Positions 4,233 to 51,100 of a stretch of DNA of 64,000 bases are shown here, one piece after another. The stretch spans positions 1,302,001-1,366,000 of the forward strand of contig NEEC01000010.1 in the NCBI GenBank assembly GCA_002189035.1. Reading direction: 5' to 3'. Positions within the stretch are counted from its first letter, which is position 1. Every line of letters begins with the position of its first letter. The stretch is from Utricularia gibba. Lineage: Eukaryota > Plantae > Magnoliophyta. The position numbers were made by a program, and so were the translations under genes. Under the pieces are notes generated by a model, which saw only the letters and a program-made list of their open reading frames with translations, was not told the origin of the DNA and made no database searches.

Positions 4233-5879
4233 ATGATGCGCTGCGCCGTGGAATTGGTTGGGCGAGCGCTGCTCGCCGCCACGGACTCCGCGCTGCATCA
4301 TCGGGCATGGAACCCGTCGCTGGAACAGACTCTTCACAAACTTAAGCTCCGAGATTTTTTGACTCCGCCGCTCGTCGCGCGAGTCATCGACTCCTATCTC
4401 CTCAACTATCACTCCCTCGCCTATGGATTCTTCACCTGGGCGTCGCAGCAACCTGGTTTTTCACACACTTCCGACACTTGCGAATCCCTCTTTAAATCGC
4501 TCTCCGCTTCACGGCAATTCCATTTAGTGGATAAGGTGTTCAAGCAGGTACGCCTTGAGAGGATTGTTCTGCAACCATCGGTTTATCGTTTTATTCTTGG
4601 TTCCCTCGTTGCTGGGAGGAGAACTCAGATGGCGTTCTCTGTGTTTTGTGATTTGGGGCCGGTGATTGGCCTTATTGGGTTTCAGGTTTGCAATTCTCTT
4701 CTCGCCGTGTTGGCTTCTGAAGGTTCGATCGTCAATGCTCGCAAGGTGCTTGATGAAATGGTTAATAGAGGTGTCAGGCTGACTACTCTTGGTTTGGGGG
4801 TCTTTGTGTGGGAGGCAAGCAGGAGCATGACTTTGACTGAAATATTTGATGTCCTGGATGCTGTAAGAAGGTCAAATTTTTCAGGAATTGATGGATCAAT
4901 CATTGCACTTCTGATGATCCATGGGCTGTGCTCAGAATCCAGAGTTAAGGATGCTGTTTATGCTTTAGGAGAGTTGAGGAAAAAAGAGTGTAAGCCTGAC
5001 TTCATGGCCTACAGAATTGTGGCTGAGAAATTGCGTGAGATGGGTTTTGTTGTTGATGTAGAAATGATTCTGAAGATGAAACGGAAGTTAGGTGTGGCAC
5101 CAAGGGCCAATGATTATAAACAGTTTATCCTGGAGTTAGTCTCCCTGAAGTTAACGCACCAAGCTAAGGAACTTGGCCAGGTGATCATCAGTGGAAACTT
5201 CACAATCGAAGACGATGTTCTCAATGTCCTGATTGGATCAGTATCTGGGGTTGATACTTGCGTTGCTGTGTCCTTCTTGATGTTTATGATTGACAAGGAT
5301 AGATTCCCAACTCTACTGACTTTGATCAACTTGAGTGAAAACCTTTGTAAACTTGGAAAGGCAGATGACTTGGTACATGTTTTCCAAATTCTGTCAGCTA
5401 AAGATTACTTCAAGAACCTGGATAGCTACAACGTAATGATCCGTTTTCTTTGCAAAGCTGGAAGAGTAAAAGAGGGTTACAAGGTCCTTGAGGAGATTAA
5501 GAAAAAAGGCCTTGTCCCGGATGTTGCATGCTACAATTCTCTTCTAGATGGTTGCTGTCAGCAAGATCTGTTACGCCCTGCGAAACGCCTCTGGGACGAG
5601 ATGTTTGCGAGCGGTTGCAGGGGAAATATGGAGAGCTACCGCATTCTTATAAGGAAATTTTCCGAAGTGGGTGACATGGAAGATGCATGTCATCTCCTCA
5701 AGCACATGACTGACAGAGGCATGGAACCTGATGAAATGATATACAAATCCCTTCTTCAAGGCGCTTCCCAAGCCAAGAATACTGAATTGGCTGCTCAAAT
5801 TAACAAATCTATCCAACACGACCCAGAGCTTGCAAAAAGCCTCAGCCGGTTTTCGCCTCTGCATCTGCAGCCAGAATGA
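4233..5879 (+). CDS. P-class pentatricopeptide repeat protein, At5g14080-like, single exon, 548 aa
   Basis: N-terminus WNPSLEQTLHKLKLRDFLTPPLVARVIDSYLLNYHSLAYGFFTWASQQPGFSH and later KRKLGVAPRANDY match my recollection of At5g14080. Clear PPR repeats, e.g. SYNVMIRFLCKAGRVKEGYKVLEEIKKKGLVPD. Confidence 0.93.
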   Translation: MMRCAVELVGRALLAATDSALHHRAWNPSLEQTLHKLKLRDFLTPPLVARVIDSYLLNYHSLAYGFFTWASQQPGFSHTSDTCESLFKSLSASRQFHLVDKVFKQVRLERIVLQPSVYRFILGSLVAGRRTQMAFSVFCDLGPVIGLIGFQVCNSLLAVLASEGSIVNARKVLDEMVNRGVRLTTLGLGVFVWEASRSMTLTEIFDVLDAVRRSNFSGIDGSIIALLMIHGLCSESRVKDAVYALGELRKKECKPDFMAYRIVAEKLREMGFVVDVEMILKMKRKLGVAPRANDYKQFILELVSLKLTHQAKELGQVIISGNFTIEDDVLNVLIGSVSGVDTCVAVSFLMFMIDKDRFPTLLTLINLSENLCKLGKADDLVHVFQILSAKDYFKNLDSYNVMIRFLCKAGRVKEGYKVLEEIKKKGLVPDVACYNSLLDGCCQQDLLRPAKRLWDEMFASGCRGNMESYRILIRKFSEVGDMEDACHLLKHMTDRGMEPDEMIYKSLLQGASQAKNTELAAQINKSIQHDPELAKSLSRFSPLHLQPE

Positions 5880-37591: not shown

Positions 37592-38755
37592 ATGGGCTGT
37601 TCTGCTTCTCGTTCTGCTGATTTTATTGCTCAGCATCAGAACCCCAATTGGAATGCTTCTCCTTCACACTGGAATTCGGTGTTACAGTCACCCTTCAACT
37701 CGTTTTCGGAAGCGAATTCGACTCCGGCTTCGAGGACTCGTTCTCTGCCGACCCCTTTAGTGCACCACCCACCTGTGAGAAAAGGGGATTCGAATCACTT
37801 TGTTGCTCTCACTTCCACAACCTATGGCTCGCTTCTGCTGCTGAGTCCATCTAACCCTAGTCCCAGTTTCCGGAGCCGGGGAGATGAGATGACGGAAGTT
37901 GAAGAAATTGGGGTTTCGGAGAAATGTGCGTCCCCTGATTCTGTTGTCAACACATGGGAGCTCATGGAAGGCCTTGACGAGAACGAATGCGCCTTCCAAA
38001 TAGTCGATTGCCCTAAAGGGAATCCGAAAAGTGAGATAGATGTAACTGAAATGGAGAAATCTGACGAGTCTGCTGAGCATCCCGTTTCCAAGCCTTTGTG
38101 GGAACATTTATCTGAAGAATCTCTCCTGGCTGGAATGGATGACAATGTGGCCTCCAGTTACAGAAAGGCATTAATGGGAAAACAAGTTGGATATGGAAAG
38201 CCAATGGAAGTTCCAAAACACCTAAAGAATGATGAGCCTCTTTCTTCACCAAATGCTCTGAAATTGAAAGATAGCGATGAATCTTGTTGTTTGTTGGGTG
38301 CTGAGGATAGAATTGTGTTTTATTATACAACTCTGAGGGGCATAAGGAAAACATATGAAGATTGTTGTGCGGTTCGGGTTATTTTGAGGGGATTCAGAGT
38401 ATGTGTTGATGAAAAGGATATATCTATGGACAGATCTTATAGAGTTGAGTTGCAGCAAGCTCTGAAATCAGAATCAGTGAGCTTGCCTCAAGTATTTATA
38501 AGAGGGAGGTACATTGGTGGCGCTGAGGATATCAAGCAGCTTAACGAGGCTGGAGATTTAGCCAAGCTACTAGAAGGTTTTCCACTCACTGATGTAGGAT
38601 TTGGTTGTGATGTTTGCGGTGATGCTCGCTTCGTCCCATGTCCGAACTGTAATGGAAGTCGAAAAGTTTACGAACAAGAAAATGGGTCGCTGAAGAGATG
38701 CGCAGAGTGCAATGAGAACGGATTGGTTCGATGCTTCTGTTGCTGCCCTCAATGA
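37592..38755 (+). CDS. Glutaredoxin-like Cys-rich protein (GRXCR/At5g39865-type), single exon, 387 aa
   Basis: N-terminal MGCSAS; NTWELMEGLDE; IVFYYTTLRGIRKTYEDC..VR.IL; DISMD; LPQVFIRGRYIGGAEDI; C-terminal CxxC repeats (CDVC, CPNC, CAEC). Confidence 0.93.
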   Translation: MGCSASRSADFIAQHQNPNWNASPSHWNSVLQSPFNSFSEANSTPASRTRSLPTPLVHHPPVRKGDSNHFVALTSTTYGSLLLLSPSNPSPSFRSRGDEMTEVEEIGVSEKCASPDSVVNTWELMEGLDENECAFQIVDCPKGNPKSEIDVTEMEKSDESAEHPVSKPLWEHLSEESLLAGMDDNVASSYRKALMGKQVGYGKPMEVPKHLKNDEPLSSPNALKLKDSDESCCLLGAEDRIVFYYTTLRGIRKTYEDCCAVRVILRGFRVCVDEKDISMDRSYRVELQQALKSESVSLPQVFIRGRYIGGAEDIKQLNEAGDLAKLLEGFPLTDVGFGCDVCGDARFVPCPNCNGSRKVYEQENGSLKRCAECNENGLVRCFCCCPQ

Positions 38756-42211: not shown

Positions 42212-43223
42212 CCGGTACATTCCTTAGGATTCTGCCCTTTTTTTTTCTGAAAATCCATCATGACATCATATGTTGCTGCCGACGCGATTCCTGGTAATTT
42301 TCTCGCAAATAGACTGGAAGGTTGCTGCGACAGGGACGACTCATCCGCCTTGGGCAATCCCACCAAGCCGAGTATGAGGAACATGGTCTGAGTTTTCGCA
42401 CTCCGCCGATTCGCTTCCCCTTTCAACATGATGTAAAAAAGTAATTTTCCGGTTCCTGGTGTGTTTGGGTGAGTTGTACAGGAAACTCCAGTATTGGCTG
42501 TATTGTACGGAAATGTGTTATTTTAAGACATGAACAAATTCATAGCACGGTGACTTTTTTTACACATTACATCAGCAACGATAAGATTTGTAATACATCC
42601 TGCATGTAAATAAGTATAAAGCAGTAAACTTGATCTACAATTAATATTTATATATTTAGAAGGTTTTTTTAATATTTATCATTGTTAAAAATGGATTTAT
42701 TAAAGTAGGATACAACTTAAATGTTATTTTTAGTTTTTAACATGTGTTTCATGTATGATTTTAATATTCTGCTTGTAAAATTGTATTAATTAATTAATTA
42801 AAAAGATTTTTTATCCTGAAACTTTAGATGATATGCATAAATCCTAATGATAGTTTCATGTTCCAAATTGTAATGACAAAGATGAATTTTAGAAACATGC
42901 CAAGTGTAAATTGTAATTAAGATATATTTAGTTTGAAAGTAAGTAATTAAATAATAAATTTAGAGATATTATTATTATATGTGTACTGAATGACCAAAAC
43001 TCATGCAACATATGCTCAGCTCAGGAAGAGATCCCATAAAAGTGCTTAGACAAAAGGTCGGTTAAACAGAGCTTGGACAAAATATTTATTTCTGAACAAG
43101 ACTTGGGCAGTGCATTGTTCGGACAGACATTCCGACCCAAATTTCTAGTGCTTGAAAAAACATTACTCGTGGAGACGAAACTTGAATACTATAAAAATAA
43201 CCTCACATATGAAGCCTCGATAA

Positions 43224-43703
43224 TGTTAAAATTCAGTATCCGATGGGTCGGTACATAAGAAACGTGGATCATAATATAAAAGATTAAGCTCAACCAATTA
43301 CTTATGATCTATAGTTTATTATATATTAGATTATTCCATTTTCATTTTCCGATATGGAATTGTGCATTCTAACACCGGTACTCCAGTCGAATTGGTCTGT
43401 GATCCAATGATGACTTGGTCCTTTTTTTATGATTATAAATAGTGCTTAGGTCATAGGTCGATCTATACTAATACGAAACTCATCTTGGTCACCCAAGCCG
43501 TGCCGCAAGGCAAACGCTCTGATACCATGTTGAAATTCAAGATCCGATGGGTCGGCCGTGTGCACACGTGAAGCCCAAGTACACAAGAAACGTGATTCAC
43601 AATAAAAAAAGATTAGACTCAATCGATTATTTATGATTTGTAGTTTATTATATACTAGACTATTTTACTTTTATTTTTCGATGTGAGATTGTGTATTCTA
43701 ATA
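43224..43703 (-). mobile_element. Complete TRIM (terminal-repeat retrotransposon in miniature), 480 bp
   Basis: 5' LTR 43528-43703 and 3' LTR 43224-43374 (the latter has an approx. 25-bp deletion); TGTT...AACA/AATA ends. tRNA-iMet PBS TGGTATCAGAGC at 43527-43516 abuts the 5' LTR. 153-bp non-coding interior. Exact 5-bp TSD GATAA (43219-43223, 43704-43708). PPT is weak. Confidence 0.9.
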
Positions 43704-43736
43704 GATAAAACTTGAGAAGTCAAAGGTTTTGAAAAT

Positions 43737-43908
43737 TATTGAAATTAAAGATGTAATAGATCAAATGAACATACGCGAAGTTCAAGTATATAATAAACAT
43801 GAATCATGTTAAAATAATTAAGTTCAATAAATTACTAGTAATTTATAATGTCTTTCATAATTGATTATTTCATTTTCAAATATTAATATGAGATTGTTTA
43901 TTCTAATA
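43737..43908 (-). mobile_element. Old, degenerate solo LTR of the same TRIM family
   Basis: tattgaaattaaag...gagattgtttattctaata is colinear with the TRIM LTR and about the same length. Flanks AAAAT/AAAAA. Confidence 0.6.
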
Positions 43909-44554
43909 AAAAATAGAAGGGAAATGGTGAAGCAAGGCTCTCTTGAGTACATTCATCCAAGTAGGTCTAGTGCTGAATGTTGGAGGGCTAATTAGAAGAA
44001 GAGGACCCGACCCGGACACTATACAATGGGACATACTCCCAAGAATGAATGTCCGATGAGGGGGCATCGGCTCTCACTCAGTAAGTTGGATCTGATTGCA
44101 GAGGACCACTCTTACAAAAGATTTGAGAAGCCCGACAAGGATCACTAGACAGCCGGACAAGTAGCTAGGAACCAATAATCTCTATAGAAATATTTTTTTT
44201 CCTTTAAGATAAGATATACACAGTTTTTTTTCTATATGATATATTATCTTTCAATTAGAAATCTAATTTTGCATCAGATAATATGTGAAAAAAATGATCA
44301 TCTTATATATATATTTGTTTAATTAATTTAGAGAAAATATGGAGGTGTTTATTTTTCTAAATGTGTAAAATGACATTAAGACCATGTTTGGTTTGTAGAT
44401 TGGAGTGTAATATGAGTATGAATTATTTGAGTATCTTTAAATTCATATCTATGAGTTTTGTGTAGAAAAATGTGTTTAATTACAAGGTTAATGTTATTGA
44501 GGTTTATTGTGTTTACTTTTCTAAATAATTAGATGTGTAGAATGACATTAAATC

Positions 44555-44727
44555 TGTTGAAATTCAGGATCCGATGAATCGGGCGATTACACGTGAAGTT
44601 CAAATATATAAGAAATATAGATCACAATAGAAAAAATTAAATTTAATCGATTATTAATAATCTGTAATTTCTTATATATTCGATTAAGTTACTTTCAAAT
44701 CACGATATGGGATTGTATATTTTAACA
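44555..44727 (-). mobile_element. Solo LTR of the same TRIM family, 173 bp
   Basis: TGTTGAAATTCAGGATCCGATG...GGGATTGTATATTTTAACA is colinear with LTR 43528-43703. Flanks AAATC/AAATG (4/5 TSD). No PBS adjacent. Confidence 0.8.
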
Positions 44728-47025
44728 AAATGCATTGATTTAAACGACCTTCAACCCAGCTTTAATACCATCGCACACTCCAAAATTTCCAACACAGATC
44801 ATCCCAACCACAAGCATCTCCTTCTAGTAAGTATCATTGCCATCAGATACAACCGACAAGCTTTGTATCTCTCCAACTACCCTTTTCATTATTAATAGAT
44901 TTTTCTTTCTAGTGTGAACAAAAGCATCTTTGGTTTTTTTTTCGTTTCCCGGCTCACCAATCTTCATATTCTTCCTAAAAATTTGATTGATTGTAAAATA
45001 GATTTTACACATACCCCTCACGTTTTTGGATTGGGGGAAACCCTTTTGACGGTGTCTGGTTTGGAGGTACTCACTGGATTAAAGATGATTTTAGGTCATA
45101 TTTGGTAAGTTTGTTTACAGATTTAAATAATTGCGTTTGTTTAGTAGACGGATCTTTCAACTTATAAAAGATTTCCATAACACTTAATCACGTATGTTTT
45201 TTTAATCAAATGAGTTTTAATTTATTGCTCTTCAACCATTGAGTTCTTAAGTATCCATCTTTCGTTCCGACCTCAAGATTTAATCTTTATTAGATTAACA
45301 CACGTATCAAATAGTTTTTTTAATTTTAACCACTCATTTATATAGACATAAATAATTTAATTAAATGAACACAACACATGTTGCTTAACTTTATTTAATA
45401 AATTTGGAAAGGGACAGATGGGCGTCCACGGGTAGATGAAGGAGACAGAATGTTATCATTCTGAAGAGCATATCCATCTCGTGGATGGGGCTGAGTCGCG
45501 GCAAGGCAATCCATCCCCAACCCTATCCCTATCCAGATTCCAAAGTAGACCCCATTCCCATGTGGACGCCTTCAAATGCCTGCAAATGATTCCATTCCGA
45601 CGGCCGCCGTGCGGACACCTCTCTCTCTCTCCCTCCACCCGAATTTCCAGGTTGTCGTCCACTCAACTCCCCGGCCCGGCACCCCCCATTCCAATTTTGT
45701 CTCTTTCTTGCACAAATAGCTGAGTTGCGCTGTGCCCTCCTCAACTTGACCTTTTTTTTTTAAGGAGGGCTGCGTTGGTGAGTATCCCACTTCAAACACT
45801 ATTTTTTTTTCCTTCTTTCTAATGATTCCTATTAGAATATGAAAGTATTAGAACAAAAAATCCCACATCATCGGAATTTAAAAGTAAAATACTTAATTAT
45901 AAATCAGTAGTAATCGATTGAATCTAATTTTTTTTGAATATTTGAACTTCATATATATTTGTTCAATCCATAGTATACTAACATAACTTGAGTGTTCAAG
46001 ATGGGTTTCATAATTGGTCTCTATTATATTGTGGAATTATAATTGATTTAATTTCATTTGTGAGATTTGAAGCATTTTATTTTTATTTTGTTATTTTATT
46101 GTTATGACTGTAACTATGAACATAATTTTACATTTGACTTATGAAGTTAGTTTAATTTTCTTTAAGATGAGTGGTTAGATTTTATTGTGATACTTTACGA
46201 GTAGAATGAATGTGTGTTTGGTTGGTATAAAAAATGAAACTTGAAGTTGTTGAGTTAATTTTTTTAATATTTAAGATAGATCTAGAAGGAAAAAAATAAA
46301 AAATAACTATTTAAAAACTCAATTTAAAATTAGATCAAAGGATTTGAATATAGTGCATAAGTAGATTTTCTTAGGAAAAGATTAATAATATTGAATAGAT
46401 CTAGTCTTATTTATTTTATTAAATGATATAACTAAATATATAATAGTCTAGAAAAATCTAAAAAAATCACAAAAATTGCTTGAGATACACCTAGATATTT
46501 TAGAATAAAAATAATATCTTAGCATTTTGATATAAAAAATTGTGGCAACACATCCATTGAACTCTTTGTTACATACATATTTTAATTCTGTTAAAGTAAG
46601 GTTTAGTATTTACTATATTGTTTTTTAATTTCATACCATTACTATTAACTTTTTATTAATCTTAATTAAGAAACATATTATCGATTCTGATAATCAAAAT
46701 ACATAAAATTTCACACCATAACCACAATTTTCTTGTGCTCAACTCCAAAACCAATATTATATGTTTTTTGGACTTGTGATTTGTATTAATCAGAAATATA
46801 AGTTTTATTTTATATGAAATTTCTATAAAAGGAAAAAAAGAAAATATTTAAAAAACAAATTTGTATTGAACGGCGTTTAACAAATTTGGACATTTTGCTA
46901 AATGGCTATTCGTTAGAATCGTCTTCCAAATAAACGAAGTTGATTATCAGGACCTACCCAGTGACCCACATCAATCATTTTTCACATGGGACCTTCTGGT
47001 CTCCATCAGATGTGAGTGTACTTGT

Positions 47026-47793
47026 ATGCCTGCAGGCTGCAGCAGCGATGATCGAAGGATCCAAAAGCTGCAGACCGGAGAGATGGGGCATTGCACTGCT
47101 CTTCGTGTTATTCAGGGGAGGCCGAGGGAGGGCTTCCAACAGCTCTCCCCCATCGGCGTCGGCGGCGGCGATAGGAGCCCCTCGCCTCCCAGTTTCAGAA
47201 ATCCCAACAGAATCCATCTTTTACTCCGCTTTCTGTATTCCATCCTCCCCACGTGCGGATCTTTCATCGTGCCGGCGGAAACCTCGTTCTTGTGGTTTCC
47301 AAGGCCGGAAGTGACCGGAACACTATTCGGACGGCGGCGCGGCCGGGTCTCATTCGCTGTGCAAAGTGACACCAAATTGGCGCCGGTTCTGTTGATCGAG
47401 CTTCCGGCGTCGACCACCACGTTGGTGAGAGAAATGTCGTCGGGAATGGTGAGAATCACGCTCGAGTTAGACAAATCGCAGCCGCAGGGAGTCTGGAGGA
47501 TGTACTGCAATGGGAAGAATATGGGATACGCTGTGTCGCGGCCGTGGACGGAGTCGGATTCTAGGTTTCTGAGCACCGTGCAGAGGGTATCCATCGGCGC
47601 CGGAGTGATTCCCGTGGCAGACGACGGCTGGAAGAGTGGCGCGTCGGCGGCGGACAGGGGAAAGGAGGAGTTACTGTACATGAGGGCCCGGTTCGAGCGA
47701 GTTGTTGGGAGTCGTGACTCAGAGGCATTTTACATGTTGAATCCGGAGGGGAATTCTGGCCCCGAATTAAGTATTTTTCTTATAAGAATTTAA
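47026..47793 (+). CDS. MIZ1: MIZU-KUSSEI 1 (DUF617) hydrotropism protein, single exon; start could be 47026 or 47083
   Basis: VTGTLFGRRRGRVSFAVQ..PVLLIELPASTTTLVREMSSGMVRITLE..WRMYCNGK..GYAVSR..VSIGAGVIP..ELLYMRARFERVVGSRDSEAFYMLNP..GPELSIFLIRI. The LLR..PTC segment is typical of the MIZ1 clade. Confidence 0.9.
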   Translation: MPAGCSSDDRRIQKLQTGEMGHCTALRVIQGRPREGFQQLSPIGVGGGDRSPSPPSFRNPNRIHLLLRFLYSILPTCGSFIVPAETSFLWFPRPEVTGTLFGRRRGRVSFAVQSDTKLAPVLLIELPASTTTLVREMSSGMVRITLELDKSQPQGVWRMYCNGKNMGYAVSRPWTESDSRFLSTVQRVSIGAGVIPVADDGWKSGASAADRGKEELLYMRARFERVVGSRDSEAFYMLNPEGNSGPELSIFLIRI

Positions 47794-48132: not shown

Positions 48133-51100
48133 TCAATAGCATCTCGGTGCTGCTGCTAAAGTCTTCTTATTTAAAGATTCTGCACAAGGGGAATCATAAC
48201 TCTTGCGAAAAGCACAAATTCTGTTACAATGAGGTTACCTAAGCATTCTCTTATGGCAGCAGCGGTTTCAGCTCCACCCCTCGTCTGGGAAAACAACAAC
48301 AGTTTGTCGTACATCTGGGCTGATGGGTGTCCAGCATCCTCCATCCAATGCAACACCTGCATCAAGCATCCTCTTGTTCATAGAACAGAACAAATTGATC
48401 TGCACCGGAGTTTTACTGCAGGCCCTCGGTGAGAGCTTGTTGTATTCACTTCGAAATATTTAATATCGATTCTCATGTTTCCACTGATTCTGATGAGACT
48501 ACTGAGGACTTACCTCAATGTACTTCCTCCAATTTCCGGCATCTAAGAGATTCTTCAATAAAACAGAGTATGTGGTCGAGCTAATTTCGGTGCCTGTTGC
48601 AACGACCTTCAGGAAGAACTGCAACATGATAACAGGAAGAATTAAAAAACATAGGCCGCAGTAAAGCTTTCAGTGTGTGTTCAGAAACAAGGACCCGGAT
48701 ACCTTCAACATAGTCTCCGTTCTTCCAACTTTTCCGAATGAATGAAGGACATTATTCAAGGTCCCAGTCGAGAGACAATCAAGAGATGTCTCCATCATTT
48801 GAACAATGTTGTTCAGTGTTTTCCAGTCCCGTAAGCTTCAAAAGTAAAAGACAAAAGAACCAGCAATGAGAAAAGAATATCTAAACCATGAAAGGCGTTA
48901 CTTATATGGAATTGTAAATGGATCAGCACGTTGAAAGACATGGTGACCATTGGTAATGGAATTTATGAAAAACAAACTTACATAGTACACGCCGAAATCA
49001 TTTCAATGAACATGGAATCAGTAAAATGGATTTTTTTGTCTCTCATGGACTCAGCAAAGAGCAGGACCTTTCCAGGCTGACATCCTCGATTAAAACTTTT
49101 CATAAGAGATAAACAAACAACTGAATCTGGTTGAACACCAGCCTTCTCCATGTCTTGAAAGACTTCAAAGGCCTTCTCCCAGTTACCTGAATATTTCGGC
49201 AAGATCAGGATGTTCTCGGATTGTACAGTGGAAAACAAAGATGTAGAACTAGCTCACCAGCTGTACCGTACGCCTGCAGCAAAGCAGTATAAGCAATGAC
49301 ATCTGGATACAAACCATCATTTTTCATCAATTTGAACATTGATTCAGCCTCAGCAAGCTGCCCCTGATCAACAAAATAAAATAAAAAAAAAGCGTCAAAA
49401 AAGAAAAAGGAATGAGGCAATTAAGTTATACAGCGTATAATACGTGCTTGCCTGATTGCTGTAAACACAAATTGCCGAAGAGTAAACTTCCTTCGACATA
49501 GGAATCTTCAAACTCCTCATTTCAGCAAGAAAATCTATGGCTACGCTGTACTTCAATGACTTGCAACAACCGCTTATCAGAATATTGTAAGTAATGGCAT
49601 CAGGTTTAACTTTCTTTTGCCTCATGCGCTGATATAAAGATAAGGCTCTTTCATATTCTCCAACGTTCATGTAACTTCCAATAGCAGAATTGTATGCAAC
49701 GGTATTTAATTCTATATCCCGCATTTCAGCAGCTCTCAGTAAAGAGTCCAACTTCACCTTCTGATGGCATCTACCGCAAGCTGCAAACAAGGAACTAAAT
49801 GAAACCGCATTTGGCAGTATACCTTGTTGCTCCATTTCACGTAGTAATTCAACAGCTTCAGCAAGAAAGCTATTAGATCCATATGCATCAATCAGTGCAT
49901 TGTACGTAACCAAATTTGGTTTACAACTGTTTCTTCTCATCAAATCAAATACCCCCTTGGCTTTATGTGGCTGCTGCGATCTTCCAAAAGCATTCAGTAA
50001 GGAAGTATAAGATACAACATCTGGACGCATTCCTCTCTGCCTCATCTCATCAAAAACCGACGAGGCTAATTCACTAAGGCCAAGTGAGGCATATGCACCA
50101 AGCAATGTATTGTATGCAACGATATTAGGTTCCAGACCCTCTGCAATTAGTGTGTCAAAAATGGCACGACAGTTTTCAACTTGACTACAAATTGAATACA
50201 TATGCATGACACTTGTGTAGGTCACAATATCAGGACGACAATCTGACCTTCTAGCTCTCATTGTATTGAAAACATTCATTGCTTCATCATATCTTCCAAG
50301 CTTAATCAAGCAATCTAGCACAATGTTAAAAGTAGTTGTATCTGGACGGATAATAGTACCCTTCAACAGCTCAAAATAGGAGAGTGCTCTTGCATATTCT
50401 GATCCAGCTTTGAAAGCTGAGAGAATGATGTTGTGAGTCACCAGATCAGGTCCAACTCCATTATCTGTCATGCTCTTACAAATTTTCAGAGCCTCCCTCC
50501 AATTGCCTCTTGAACCACATGCATTAATTAAATTGTTATAAGTTGATCTACTTGGAGGAATCTGCAGCAAATGAGAAGTCAACTGGATTCCACCTTAAAC
50601 AGCATAAAAAATGCATGGAAATGAAAAAGGATGACAGGCCCATGACGACCTAGATTTTCAGGAGCATTCCATGAACAAGTAGTTCATGCCATGGAAATTA
50701 AAATGTAAGAATGAATTTAGATGACTGAAGCTCAAACTACCATAGATCTAAATGAATTCCCAATTCCACCAATACACCAATTTTCTAACCTGAACTCATT
50801 CGGAAAGTGATAAGAGTGTTTACTAACTTAAAATTAACAAGTTTAATCCCTTCAATTCATTGGGAAAATCACAAAAACCAACCAAATAGGCGTAAAATAG
50901 TAACTGCCAATATACAAAAATTTAATACTCACTGCTGCACGGAGCATGTCGTTCATTATGTTCAATCCCCAACGCCATTGACCAGCCCTCCCGTGTGCAC
51001 TGATAAGAGCATTGTAGGTGTCCACATTAGGCTTGCACCTAGAATAAATACAAGAATGAAGTCATTAGAGAAAGCACAATTAGCTGATGCTCAAACTTCT

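Follow-up and report, generated by a model that had tools for sequence, protein, structure and literature searches.

LTRs of a TRIM family and their USE-TATA layout

Positions 43219 to 46005 of the analysed stretch of Utricularia gibba DNA (64,000 nucleotides, here called the window) contain one complete TRIM of 480 bp and three further LTRs, solo or decayed, all of one family. The complete element, which is shorter than 1 kb and without coding capacity, consists of two LTRs with an initiator tRNA-Met PBS and carries a 5-bp target-site duplication, TTATC, on either flank. Its LTRs measure 176 nt (LTR B) and 151 nt (LTR C) and have ends of the type TGTT...AACA, the 5′ end of LTR B reading TATT from a G>A change. 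The features detected were:

44555..44727, minus strand: LTR A, solo, having TGTT...AACA ends, no PBS behind it and near-matching flanks CATTT/GATTT
44703..44713, minus strand: USE-like ATCCCATATCG of LTR A, one mismatch (C>T)
44672..44678, minus strand: TATATAA of LTR A, 24 nt 3′ of the USE
44631..44636, minus strand: T6 run of LTR A, beginning 42 nt past the TATA start
43737..43908, minus strand: LTR D, solo and decayed, whose end lies 32 nt upstream of LTR B
43704..43708, minus strand: TTATC, the target-site duplication flanking the complete TRIM on its 5′ side
43528..43703, minus strand: LTR B (176 nt), the 5′ repeat of the complete element
43679..43689, minus strand: USE-like ATCTCACATCG of LTR B, one mismatch (C>T)
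43648..43654, minus strand: TATATAA of LTR B, 24 nt 3′ of the USE
43604..43610, minus strand: T7 run in LTR B, located some 13 nt past a start predicted as USE + 55 nt
43516..43527, minus strand: PBS TGGTATCAGAGC of the initiator tRNA-Met type, directly behind LTR B
43375..43515, minus strand: internal domain of about 140 nt, non-coding, with no run of T4 or longer
43224..43374, minus strand: LTR C (151 nt), the 3′ repeat of the complete element, which shows a 24-nt deletion when compared with LTR B
43350..43360, minus strand: USE-like ATTCCATATCG of LTR C, two mismatches (both C>T)
43319..43325, minus strand: TATATAA of LTR C, 24 nt 3′ of the USE
43219..43223, minus strand: TTATC, the target-site duplication flanking the complete TRIM on its 3′ side
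45844..46005, plus strand: LTR E, an inverted decayed copy with a T8 run

The polypurine tract before LTR C is represented by a weak purine stretch only (GACTGGAG...), whereas a second family considered below (family 2) has a clear one (GAGGGGGG). LTR D retains a USE relic (ATCTCATATTA) and the 24-nt gap, its TATA having decayed to TATGAA, and LTR E shows ATCCCACATC with a 3-nt insertion (ATC) and a 12-nt deletion that took out the TATATAA. Across the five LTR copies, the USE departs from ATCCCACATCG by transitions only (C>T or G>A). In the window the copies are old and decayed and do not represent active promoters; when the RNA of the window LTR was folded for the part 3′ of the TATA, the z-scores were close to 0.

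The original prediction had placed three USE-like 11-mers on the minus strand, each followed by exactly 24 nt and then by TATATAA(G/T), and had cautioned that every copy departs from the USE at one or two positions. The 11-mers were found where they had been placed, the spacing is true of LTRs A, B and C, and the mismatches number one, one and two, respectively. The observation of a USE-like 11-mer, a 24-nt spacer and a TATA in the TRIM LTRs is thus confirmed; in this family the TATA starts at LTR position 50. A composite pattern (USE + 24 N + TATAWA, with at most two mismatches) was matched three times in the window against a shuffle mean of 0.04, and none of 100 shuffles reached three matches. 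As these copies are related, the matches in LTRs A, B and C count as one event. The USE alone, with at most two mismatches, is expected by chance about 18 times per 64 kb.

Recurrence of the layout in other plant LTR families

A set of 120 plant contigs was retrieved by means of an anchor composed of the LTR end and the PBS, of which the motif was not part; these are metagenome loci whose host plants are perhaps only one or a few. The same anchor gave no match when scanned against viral contigs. Among 121 LTR ends, a USE with at most two mismatches was present in 23 and a perfect one in 8. At least four LTR groups bear a perfect or near-perfect GTCCCACATCG followed by 24-26 nt and a TATA, and these cannot be aligned with the window family since the HMM cross-searches were empty (no match of the window-LTR HMM in the 120 plant loci, none of the family-2 HMM in the window). 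USE and TATA are combined at a distance of 23-26 nt in 15 of the 19 members of family 2, in the L007 group and in L013, L021 and L078; the combination is absent from LTR groups of 38, 16, 7 and 4 members obtained with the same anchor, which also retrieved a USE-less TRIM family with a 79-nt LTR that serves as a control.

In all five TRIM families the gap between USE and TATA is 24-26 nt, while the spacer sequences vary from family to family and the USE is located 14-40 nt into the LTR. An alignment of six sequences from five LTR families (A2, 46% mean identity) has the LTR ends, the USE, the TATA and the T-run as its invariant columns. Over 824 kb of plant loci, the distances between a USE-like site and the TATA that follows it show maxima at 24 nt (9 sites) and 26 nt (26 sites), and the reversed-sequence control is flat. 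The concern that equal spacing in copies of shared ancestry is not independent evidence is answered by the presence of the same module in families that cannot be aligned. The expectation of stronger conservation in the USE than elsewhere in the LTR failed within family 2, and the comparisons show an apparent constraint on the USE between families only. The family-2 spacer shares 13 of 24 positions with that of AtU6-26, including a 9-nt run (shuffle P 2.5e-4, a post hoc comparison), and the family is abundant, with 221-1142 matching contigs per DNA run.

Two larger elements bear on the spacing. L050 is a larger relative with 411-nt LTRs, a gag-like remnant and the same USE at a 33-nt gap, which is Pol II-type spacing. 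In L007 the module precedes at least 2 kb of internal sequence, in which T-runs occur together with a gag-like remnant, itself faint (Pfam E 0.017). The Pfam scores of the remnants of both L007 and L050 fell below threshold, and they are therefore termed gag-like only.

T-runs, proposed mechanism and alternative explanations

The T-run past the TATA, which had been raised as a possible early stop for Pol III, is real. It comprises T6, T7, T4, T4 and T8 in LTRs A to E and, in the window copies, begins 42-45 nt past the initial T of the TATA. A conserved run of T4-T8 is found 6-16 nt past the predicted start in every family, and 13-16 nt past it for the T6-T8 runs of the window; it may act as the R/U5 terminator of the LTR element or may block transcripts of any kind. 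Four Ts are the minimal Pol III terminator and six or more the maximal one, as cited in a passage of bioRxiv 10.1101/2022.07.06.498962, and the T6-T8 runs of three window copies should produce full termination. Depletion of runs of T4 or longer in the predicted transcript body was not significant (0 observed vs 1.5 expected, P 0.18), and the T-run density of LTRs with Pol III spacing is not below that of the Pol II-spaced L050. In family 2, a hairpin with a few compensatory changes covers the predicted start and the T4 alike, suggesting that the functional RNA reaches past both. No LTR matches were detected in the single RNA-labelled run, which consists of assembled contigs of unconfirmed RNA origin. 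Regarding the claim of a U6/U3-type Pol III promoter, the layout is upheld and extends across families; the Pol III step is partly supported, with a T-run 6-16 nt past the predicted start and a T-run depletion short of significance standing against it.

The sequence data strongly support the presence in these LTRs of a plant snRNA-type USE/TATA module with U6/U3-type spacing, and its occurrence in unrelated TRIM families suggests that it is probably a real, undescribed promoter type. That the module is a real USE/TATA promoter maintained by selection is considered quite likely. The explanation favored here, to which a probability of about 0.5 is assigned, is that an ancestral snRNA-type module acts as the TRIM's own promoter. 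The U3 part of the LTR would be built round the promoter module of an snRNA gene (RTCCCACATCG, 24-26 bp and a TATA box), which would be ancestral and would have been retained across a wider group of TRIM LTRs by selection on propagation of the element. SNAPc would bind the USE and TBP the TATA, with transcription starting about 55 nt past the USE, and each cycle of retrotransposition would restore the external promoter, borne in U3, to the 5′ LTR. Because the U3 promoter is recopied to the 5′ LTR, an LTR element can carry an external promoter and a SINE cannot. The anatomy, an occurrence beyond chance and the conservation of motif and spacing from family to family are established; that SNAPc binds, that the module is active as a promoter, that it is specific to Pol III and what the T-run does are inferred.

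Whether Pol III uses the module is evenly balanced, and it is somewhat doubtful that Pol III makes the full-length template RNA. The T-run in the 3′ LTR may form the RNA 3′ end, giving a short R. Transcripts would have to read through the T-run in the 5′ LTR; with a T4, as in the other families, this is plausible, and with the T6-T8 of the window it is implausible. More tentatively still, a weak T4 terminator close behind the start might set an R of about 10 nt, and one helical turn of spacer might pick the polymerase that copies the retroelement, as the comparison with L050 would indicate.

The module could alternatively be an LTR promoter for RNA polymerase II with SNAPc as activator, the TRIM RNA being a conventional Pol II transcript and the T-rich stretch a normal component of the start region, the 5′ leader or a U-rich 3′-end signal. 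This reading is rather unlikely but has several facts on its side: TRIMs other than Cassandra are assumed to be driven by Pol II on account of their TATA box (PMC10853983), a T-run near the predicted start together with a hairpin spanning it fits an RNA that is not terminated there, L050 carries the same USE at a Pol II-type gap of 33 nt, and L007 has a long internal region with T-runs behind an LTR with a 24-nt gap. It is opposed by the 24-26 nt gap of all five TRIM families, equal to that of AtU6-26 and one helical turn below the Pol II snRNA spacing, a difference reported to determine the choice of polymerase, and by the lack of an evident poly(A) signal in the short LTRs, the same having been noted in the SMART paper for its TRIM. 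It is improbable that the Pol III machinery is recruited and yields only very short, terminated RNAs, the benefit being indirect, for instance by keeping the LTR open or unsilenced or by drawing Pol III-targeting integrases to insert. The T6-T8 runs 13-16 nt past the predicted start in the window would agree with this, as would the five LTR copies, separate insertions within 2.8 kb and one of them 32 nt from another, and the yeast elements Ty1 and Ty3 are reported to have their integration tethered to Pol III genes. Nevertheless, the proposal is speculative, Pol III-tethered integration lacks support for plant Copia-type elements, and the clustering could equally arise from local recombination or from a regional bias of insertion or retention.

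Little probability is likewise given to conservation of the 11-mer for a reason unrelated to snRNA genes, such as binding of another DNA-binding factor or a cis signal in reverse transcription or integration, with the likeness to the USE being coincidental. Its position 14-40 nt into the LTR is one where signals for integration or plus-strand transfer could sit, but all 11 positions match the USE, the ATCG tail included, the distance to the LTR end varies while that to the TATA is fixed at 24-26 nt, and the gaps in the 824 kb cluster solely at two canonical snRNA spacings. A chance match of a short degenerate motif in AT-rich repeats of shared ancestry could be entertained from the one or two mismatches of each window copy and from the roughly 18 USE matches expected per 64 kb; the composite count (3 observed vs 0.04 expected) speaks against it, and it is effectively refuted by perfect 11-mers at the same spacing in unalignable families that were retrieved without the motif.

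Cassandra aside, TRIMs are taken to use Pol II on account of a TATA box, yet no poly(A) signal is present in LTRs of this tiny size (PMC3281118, PMC10853983). If the favored explanation, that of a promoter of snRNA type belonging to the TRIM itself, is correct, the USE/TATA module would be a concrete and readily testable answer to how TRIMs are transcribed, and an external type-3 promoter would join the TRIMp3 concept, which so far includes internal promoters derived from 5S and tRNA only. Mobile sites for the binding of SNAPc/TBP would then lie near plant genes in numbers of hundreds to thousands, LTR matches to USE + TATA in searches for type-3 Pol III genes would be either false positives or new transcription units, and these elements would be of relevance to small-RNA biogenesis. 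The naturally diverse promoter cores of about 65 bp may be of use for guide-RNA expression, and L050, in which the spacing is of Pol II type, points to a natural experiment on the rule that relates spacing to polymerase.

Comparison with known TRIMs and type-3 promoters

Scans with Rfam (gathering and E-value thresholds) and ARAGORN detected no 5S, tRNA, U6 or 7SL bodies in the window TRIMs or in L097, L013, L021 and L117. As the LTRs contain no 5S, tRNA or snRNA segment, identity of the window TRIM with Cassandra, Helenus or Ajax was ruled out. Cassandra, which belongs to the TRIMp3 concept (PMC10886601; PMC10853983), resembles the window family: it too is a non-autonomous TRIM, has a PBS and short LTRs, and bears a promoter layout of Pol III type in the LTR, and a T-run terminator within each LTR poses the same difficulty for both. 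However, the promoter of Cassandra is gene-internal (type 1) and accompanied by a 5S-like RNA body, whereas that of the window family would be external, with USE and TATA (type 3). For Helenus and Ajax a Pol III promoter was also proposed from sequence alone, and the element length is within the Pol III range, but their promoters are internal A/B-box or 5S promoters originating from insertions of SINEs or small RNAs. No external type-3 promoter is named by Kojima (2024; PMC10886601), the sole further possibility mentioned being a 7SL-derived TRIM.

With canonical TRIMs (Katydid, Br1-4, SMART, Wukong and the Cassandra-like element of Asteraceae) the window family shares the size, the TGTT...AACA ends, the initiator tRNA-Met PBS, the 5-bp duplication and the tandem and solo derivatives. 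In a Cassandra-like TRIM the TATA is reported to lie 48 nt in from the 5′ end of the LTR (PMC10853983), and the SMART LTR has a TATA and no recognisable poly(A) or termination signal. In contrast to the window family, the canonical elements are assumed to be driven by Pol II, and a USE is unreported for them in the literature examined. The statement that no TRIM with an external SNAPc-type promoter is known agrees with the accessible literature, in which no link between USE and TRIMs was found.

The rule on spacing and the USE consensus RTCCCACATCG are those of plant snRNA genes (PMC9845283; bioRxiv 10.1101/2022.07.06.498962), a type-3 promoter would be expected to start transcription about 54-55 bp past the USE, and the core promoter of Arabidopsis U6-26 consists of the USE, 24 nt and TTTATATA (bioRxiv 10.1101/2024.02.11.579803). 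The TRIM LTRs present two elements of a plant type-3 promoter, namely a USE (with one or two transition mismatches in the window and perfect in 8 LTR ends elsewhere) and a gap of 24-26 nt, and are like AtU6-26 in USE consensus, TATA box and spacer, the latter being 24 nt to TTTATA and 26 nt to the first TATA. They differ from U6 and U3 genes in that no snRNA stands behind the module, which is mobile and present in hundreds of copies, and in that the T-run comes 6-16 nt past the predicted start rather than after a gene of about 100 nt.

A parallel in the use of the module is offered by the interface-induced MIRNA loci of Cuscuta campestris, in which the snRNA USE at Pol III spacing has been co-opted by a large non-snRNA family (bioRxiv 10.1101/2022.07.06.498962). 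Those loci are hairpin miRNA genes and not retroelements, with mapped starts, a test of USE dependence and T-runs located behind the hairpin; the inference made for them likewise began from sequence geometry and downstream T-runs.

The TRIM cluster and its USE/TATA module

Exactly five LTR copies of one TRIM family, A to E, were detected in the 64-kb window with an HMM built from LTR copies, and B and C delimit a complete TRIM with TTATC at both flanks.

LTR copies and complete TRIM in the window (coordinates, strand, feature)
43708-43219, minus: complete TRIM (5' LTR, PBS, internal domain, 3' LTR, flanking TTATC)
43703-43528, minus: LTR B, 5' LTR of the complete TRIM, 176 nt
43527-43516, minus: PBS of the complete TRIM, TGGTATCAGAGC
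Between PBS and LTR C, minus: internal domain of the complete TRIM, about 140 nt, non-coding
43374-43224, minus: LTR C, 3' LTR of the complete TRIM, 151 nt
44727-44555, minus: LTR A, solo LTR (HMM of LTR copies)
43908-43737, minus: LTR D, decayed solo LTR (HMM), ending 32 nt upstream of B
45844-46005, plus: LTR E, decayed, inverted copy (HMM of LTR copies)

These copies are old relics. At least four separate insertion events gave the five LTRs within 2.8 kb (43219-46005), a clustering that could stem from local recombination, from regional retention or from a preference for inserting beside copies already present. Intact single-exon ORFs near the cluster, at 4233-5879 (+), 37592-38755 (+), 47026-47793 (+) and 49395-50582 (-), encode two PPR proteins, one glutaredoxin-domain protein and one DUF617 protein, consistent with TRIMs placed in gene-rich DNA. 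RNA genes were not found in the 64-kb window (Rfam, ARAGORN), and an E-value scan of the TRIM region gave no weak signal of 5S, tRNA or snRNA.

The three 11-mers that the original prediction had likened to the upstream sequence element (USE) of plant snRNA genes were recovered in place, each followed by exactly 24 nt and TATATAA. This composite pattern (USE, 24 nt, TATA) has three matches in the window against 0.04 expected, which count as one event because the three LTR copies are related; the observation stands, and chance does not explain it. In copy D the USE and TATA have both decayed but remain in the 24-nt register, and copy E keeps ATCCCACATC but carries an insertion and no longer has the TATA. 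All departures from ATCCCACATCG in the five copies are C>T or G>A transitions, the usual decay of methylated repeats, which points to a perfect USE as the most likely state of the ancestral LTR of this family.

Contigs of three DNA runs were placed on the window LTRs at 80% likeness, 221-1142 contigs per run, and the family is therefore abundant. Along the LTRs the contig maximum falls on the stretch from TATA to the T-run; upstream of TATA many paralogs fall under 80% identity to the window LTRs, and the loose-end consensuses there contain ATATTG or ATTCCATATCA at 24-25 nt from TATA, motifs that read as transition-decayed USEs in register. One long contig of run X6 on 43862-44553, with 82 differences, nearly all C>T, looks as if it came from a library treated with bisulfite or from a paralog with heavy deamination.

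Recurrence and spacing of the module in other LTR families

An anchor composed of the LTR 3' end and PBS (TTYAACATGGTATCAGAGC), with neither USE nor TATA, was scanned against metagenome contigs and gave 120 plant loci (824 kb in total). The window-LTR HMM had no match in these loci even at E = 10, and the HMM of family 2, a USE-bearing group among them, had none in the window. Of 121 LTR ends, 23 have a USE with 2 mismatches at most, and in eight of these the motif is a perfect GTCCCACATCG. After clustering of the LTR ends into 34 groups, USE plus TATA at 23-26 nt was found in family 2 (15/19 members), the L007 group, L013 (with relatives L040 and L047), L021 and L078, and was absent from a 38-member group (LTRs of about 160 nt, internal regions of 1-4.5 kb), a 16-member TRIM group (79-nt LTRs) and the remaining groups. 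Thus, the caveat that equal spacing among copies of shared ancestry is not independent evidence is answered by recurrence of the module in LTRs without an HMM match to the window family. In family 2 the TRIM measures 331 bp, its LTRs being about 125 nt and its internal domain about 81 nt long; its PPT is GAGGGGGG. The USE-less TRIM family with 79-nt LTRs, which start with TGTTAGAGAATAATATAAATCATATC (L012, L026, L041, L045, L052, L118, and L119; internal domains of about 80-195 nt, often tandem), serves as control.

The first TATA lies 24 nt from the USE in window copies A to D, L013 and L007, and 26 nt from it in family 2 and L021. In the core promoter of Arabidopsis U6-26 the USE is followed by 24 nt and TTTATATA, with the first TATA at 26 nt (bioRxiv 10.1101/2024.02.11.579803). 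Over all loci, the gap between a USE-like site (2 mismatches or fewer) and the TATA that follows it showed sharp peaks at 24 (9 sites) and 26 (26 sites) and a smaller one at 33 (4 sites); in controls with reversed sequences the distribution was flat. The USE consensus RTCCCACATCG is located near -70 and the TATA near -30, the USE of U6/U3 genes being one helical turn nearer than in Pol II snRNA genes (PMC9845283); USE-to-start distances of 54-55 bp lead to Pol III and of 66-67 bp to Pol II (bioRxiv 10.1101/2022.07.06.498962). By USE-TATA distance the TRIM geometry is the published Pol III one, in agreement with the original prediction. Two family-2 LTRs, in L001 (5058+) and L067 (7921+), have lost 12 nt between two GATAAGA repeats, which cuts the gap to about 12-14 nt, and are natural spacing mutants.

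How far the USE stands from the LTR 5' end varies by family (14 to 40 nt), and spacer sequences are unrelated. An alignment of six LTR sequences from five families has 46% mean column identity, its invariant columns being the LTR ends, USE, TATA and T-run. Within family 2, a column comparison did not bear out the proposal that the USE would surpass the remaining LTR in conservation; constraint on the USE shows up in comparisons between families alone, a pattern to be expected when inserted copies decay neutrally.

Polymerase assignment and larger relatives

The T-run anticipated downstream of TATA is present (T6, T7, T4, T4, and T8 in copies A to E), starting 42-45 nt past the TATA start in A-D and 30 nt past the displaced TATA in E. 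It is kept between families (T4 in family 2, L013, L021, and L007; T4-T8 in the window), and the predicted start (USE + 55 nt) precedes it by 6-16 nt. An LTR element copied by Pol III needs a terminator inside the LTR past the start, and this creates R, as in Cassandra. A weak T4 could be a compromise that lets the polymerase pass in the 5' LTR and stops it in the 3' LTR, a proposal that the T6-T8 runs of the window do not fit unless they lengthened after insertion; in Pol III terminators four Ts are minimal and six or more maximal (bioRxiv 10.1101/2022.07.06.498962). Depletion of T-runs in the predicted transcript body was not significant, T-run density in the Pol III-spaced LTRs is no lower than in L050, a larger USE-bearing relative, and both the predicted start and the T4 of family 2 fall within a 12-bp hairpin that shows a few compensatory pairs, a sign that a functional family-2 RNA may run past both. 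These three points weaken the Pol III reading. In a group of TRIM LTRs the module is ancestral and was selected, and it is probably (about 0.8) a genuine promoter. Its geometry predicts Pol III; use by Pol III is an evenly balanced call, made from sequence and kept at that level by the T-run problem.

The hairpin, e.g., at L011:9107-9246 (+), is formed by CTCA-CCTTACAA / TTGTAAGG-A-TGAG, with compensatory changes from TA to CG in three sequences and CG to AT in one. A significant RNA fold was not found in the window LTR. At 43620-43627 in LTR B, the start predicted from USE + 55 nt, lies the perfect palindrome AATCGATT, which LTRs A and E share at the matching position; in C it has decayed to AATTGGTT.

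Two larger relatives are single cases. L050, 1.5 kb long and bounded by 411-nt LTRs, has an iMet-like PBS interrupted by one inserted base and an ORF of 80 aa likened by eye to a gag remnant (Pfam not significant); it carries GTCCCACATTG or GTCCCACATCA, 33 nt, then TATATATT, a Pol II-type spacing.

L050:5449-5872, minus: L050 LTR, second LTR about 1.1 kb downstream

In L007 the 24-nt module precedes an internal sequence of 2 kb or more, which has a faint match to Copia gag (E 0.017). L057 contains (around 5300-5500, +) a roughly 131-bp tandem repeat with the unit ATCCCACATTG, 33 nt, TATATATA, possibly a satellite that arose from a USE-bearing LTR. The spacers of family 2 and AtU6-26 agree at 13/24 positions, with the 9-nt run TAGATAAGA at equal offset (shuffle P 2.5e-4, post hoc comparison), a likeness that hints at capture of the family-2 U3 from a U6-type gene.

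Relation to known TRIMs

The name TRIMp3 covers Cassandra, Helenus and Ajax, TRIMs whose Pol III promoters are internal and derived from small RNAs (PMC10886601). The present elements differ from these in having no 5S or tRNA segment (Rfam, ARAGORN, E-value scans), which sets them apart from TRIMp3 with an internal promoter. In recent work non-Cassandra TRIMs are all still treated as Pol II elements because of their TATA box, which in a Cassandra-like TRIM lies 48 nt from the LTR start (PMC10853983). For SMART a TATA was noted and no poly(A) or termination signal (PMC3281118), and a 2026 survey of LTR acquisitions reports only rDNA- and tRNA-derived ones (PMC13570524). A link between the USE and a retrotransposon or LTR was not found in full-text searches of the literature; older papers may depict the motif without interpreting it. 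[quoted passage not shown] Judged by their promoter layout, the present elements would belong among the TRIMs with Pol III-type promoters and would extend the TRIMp3 idea to an external type-3 promoter.
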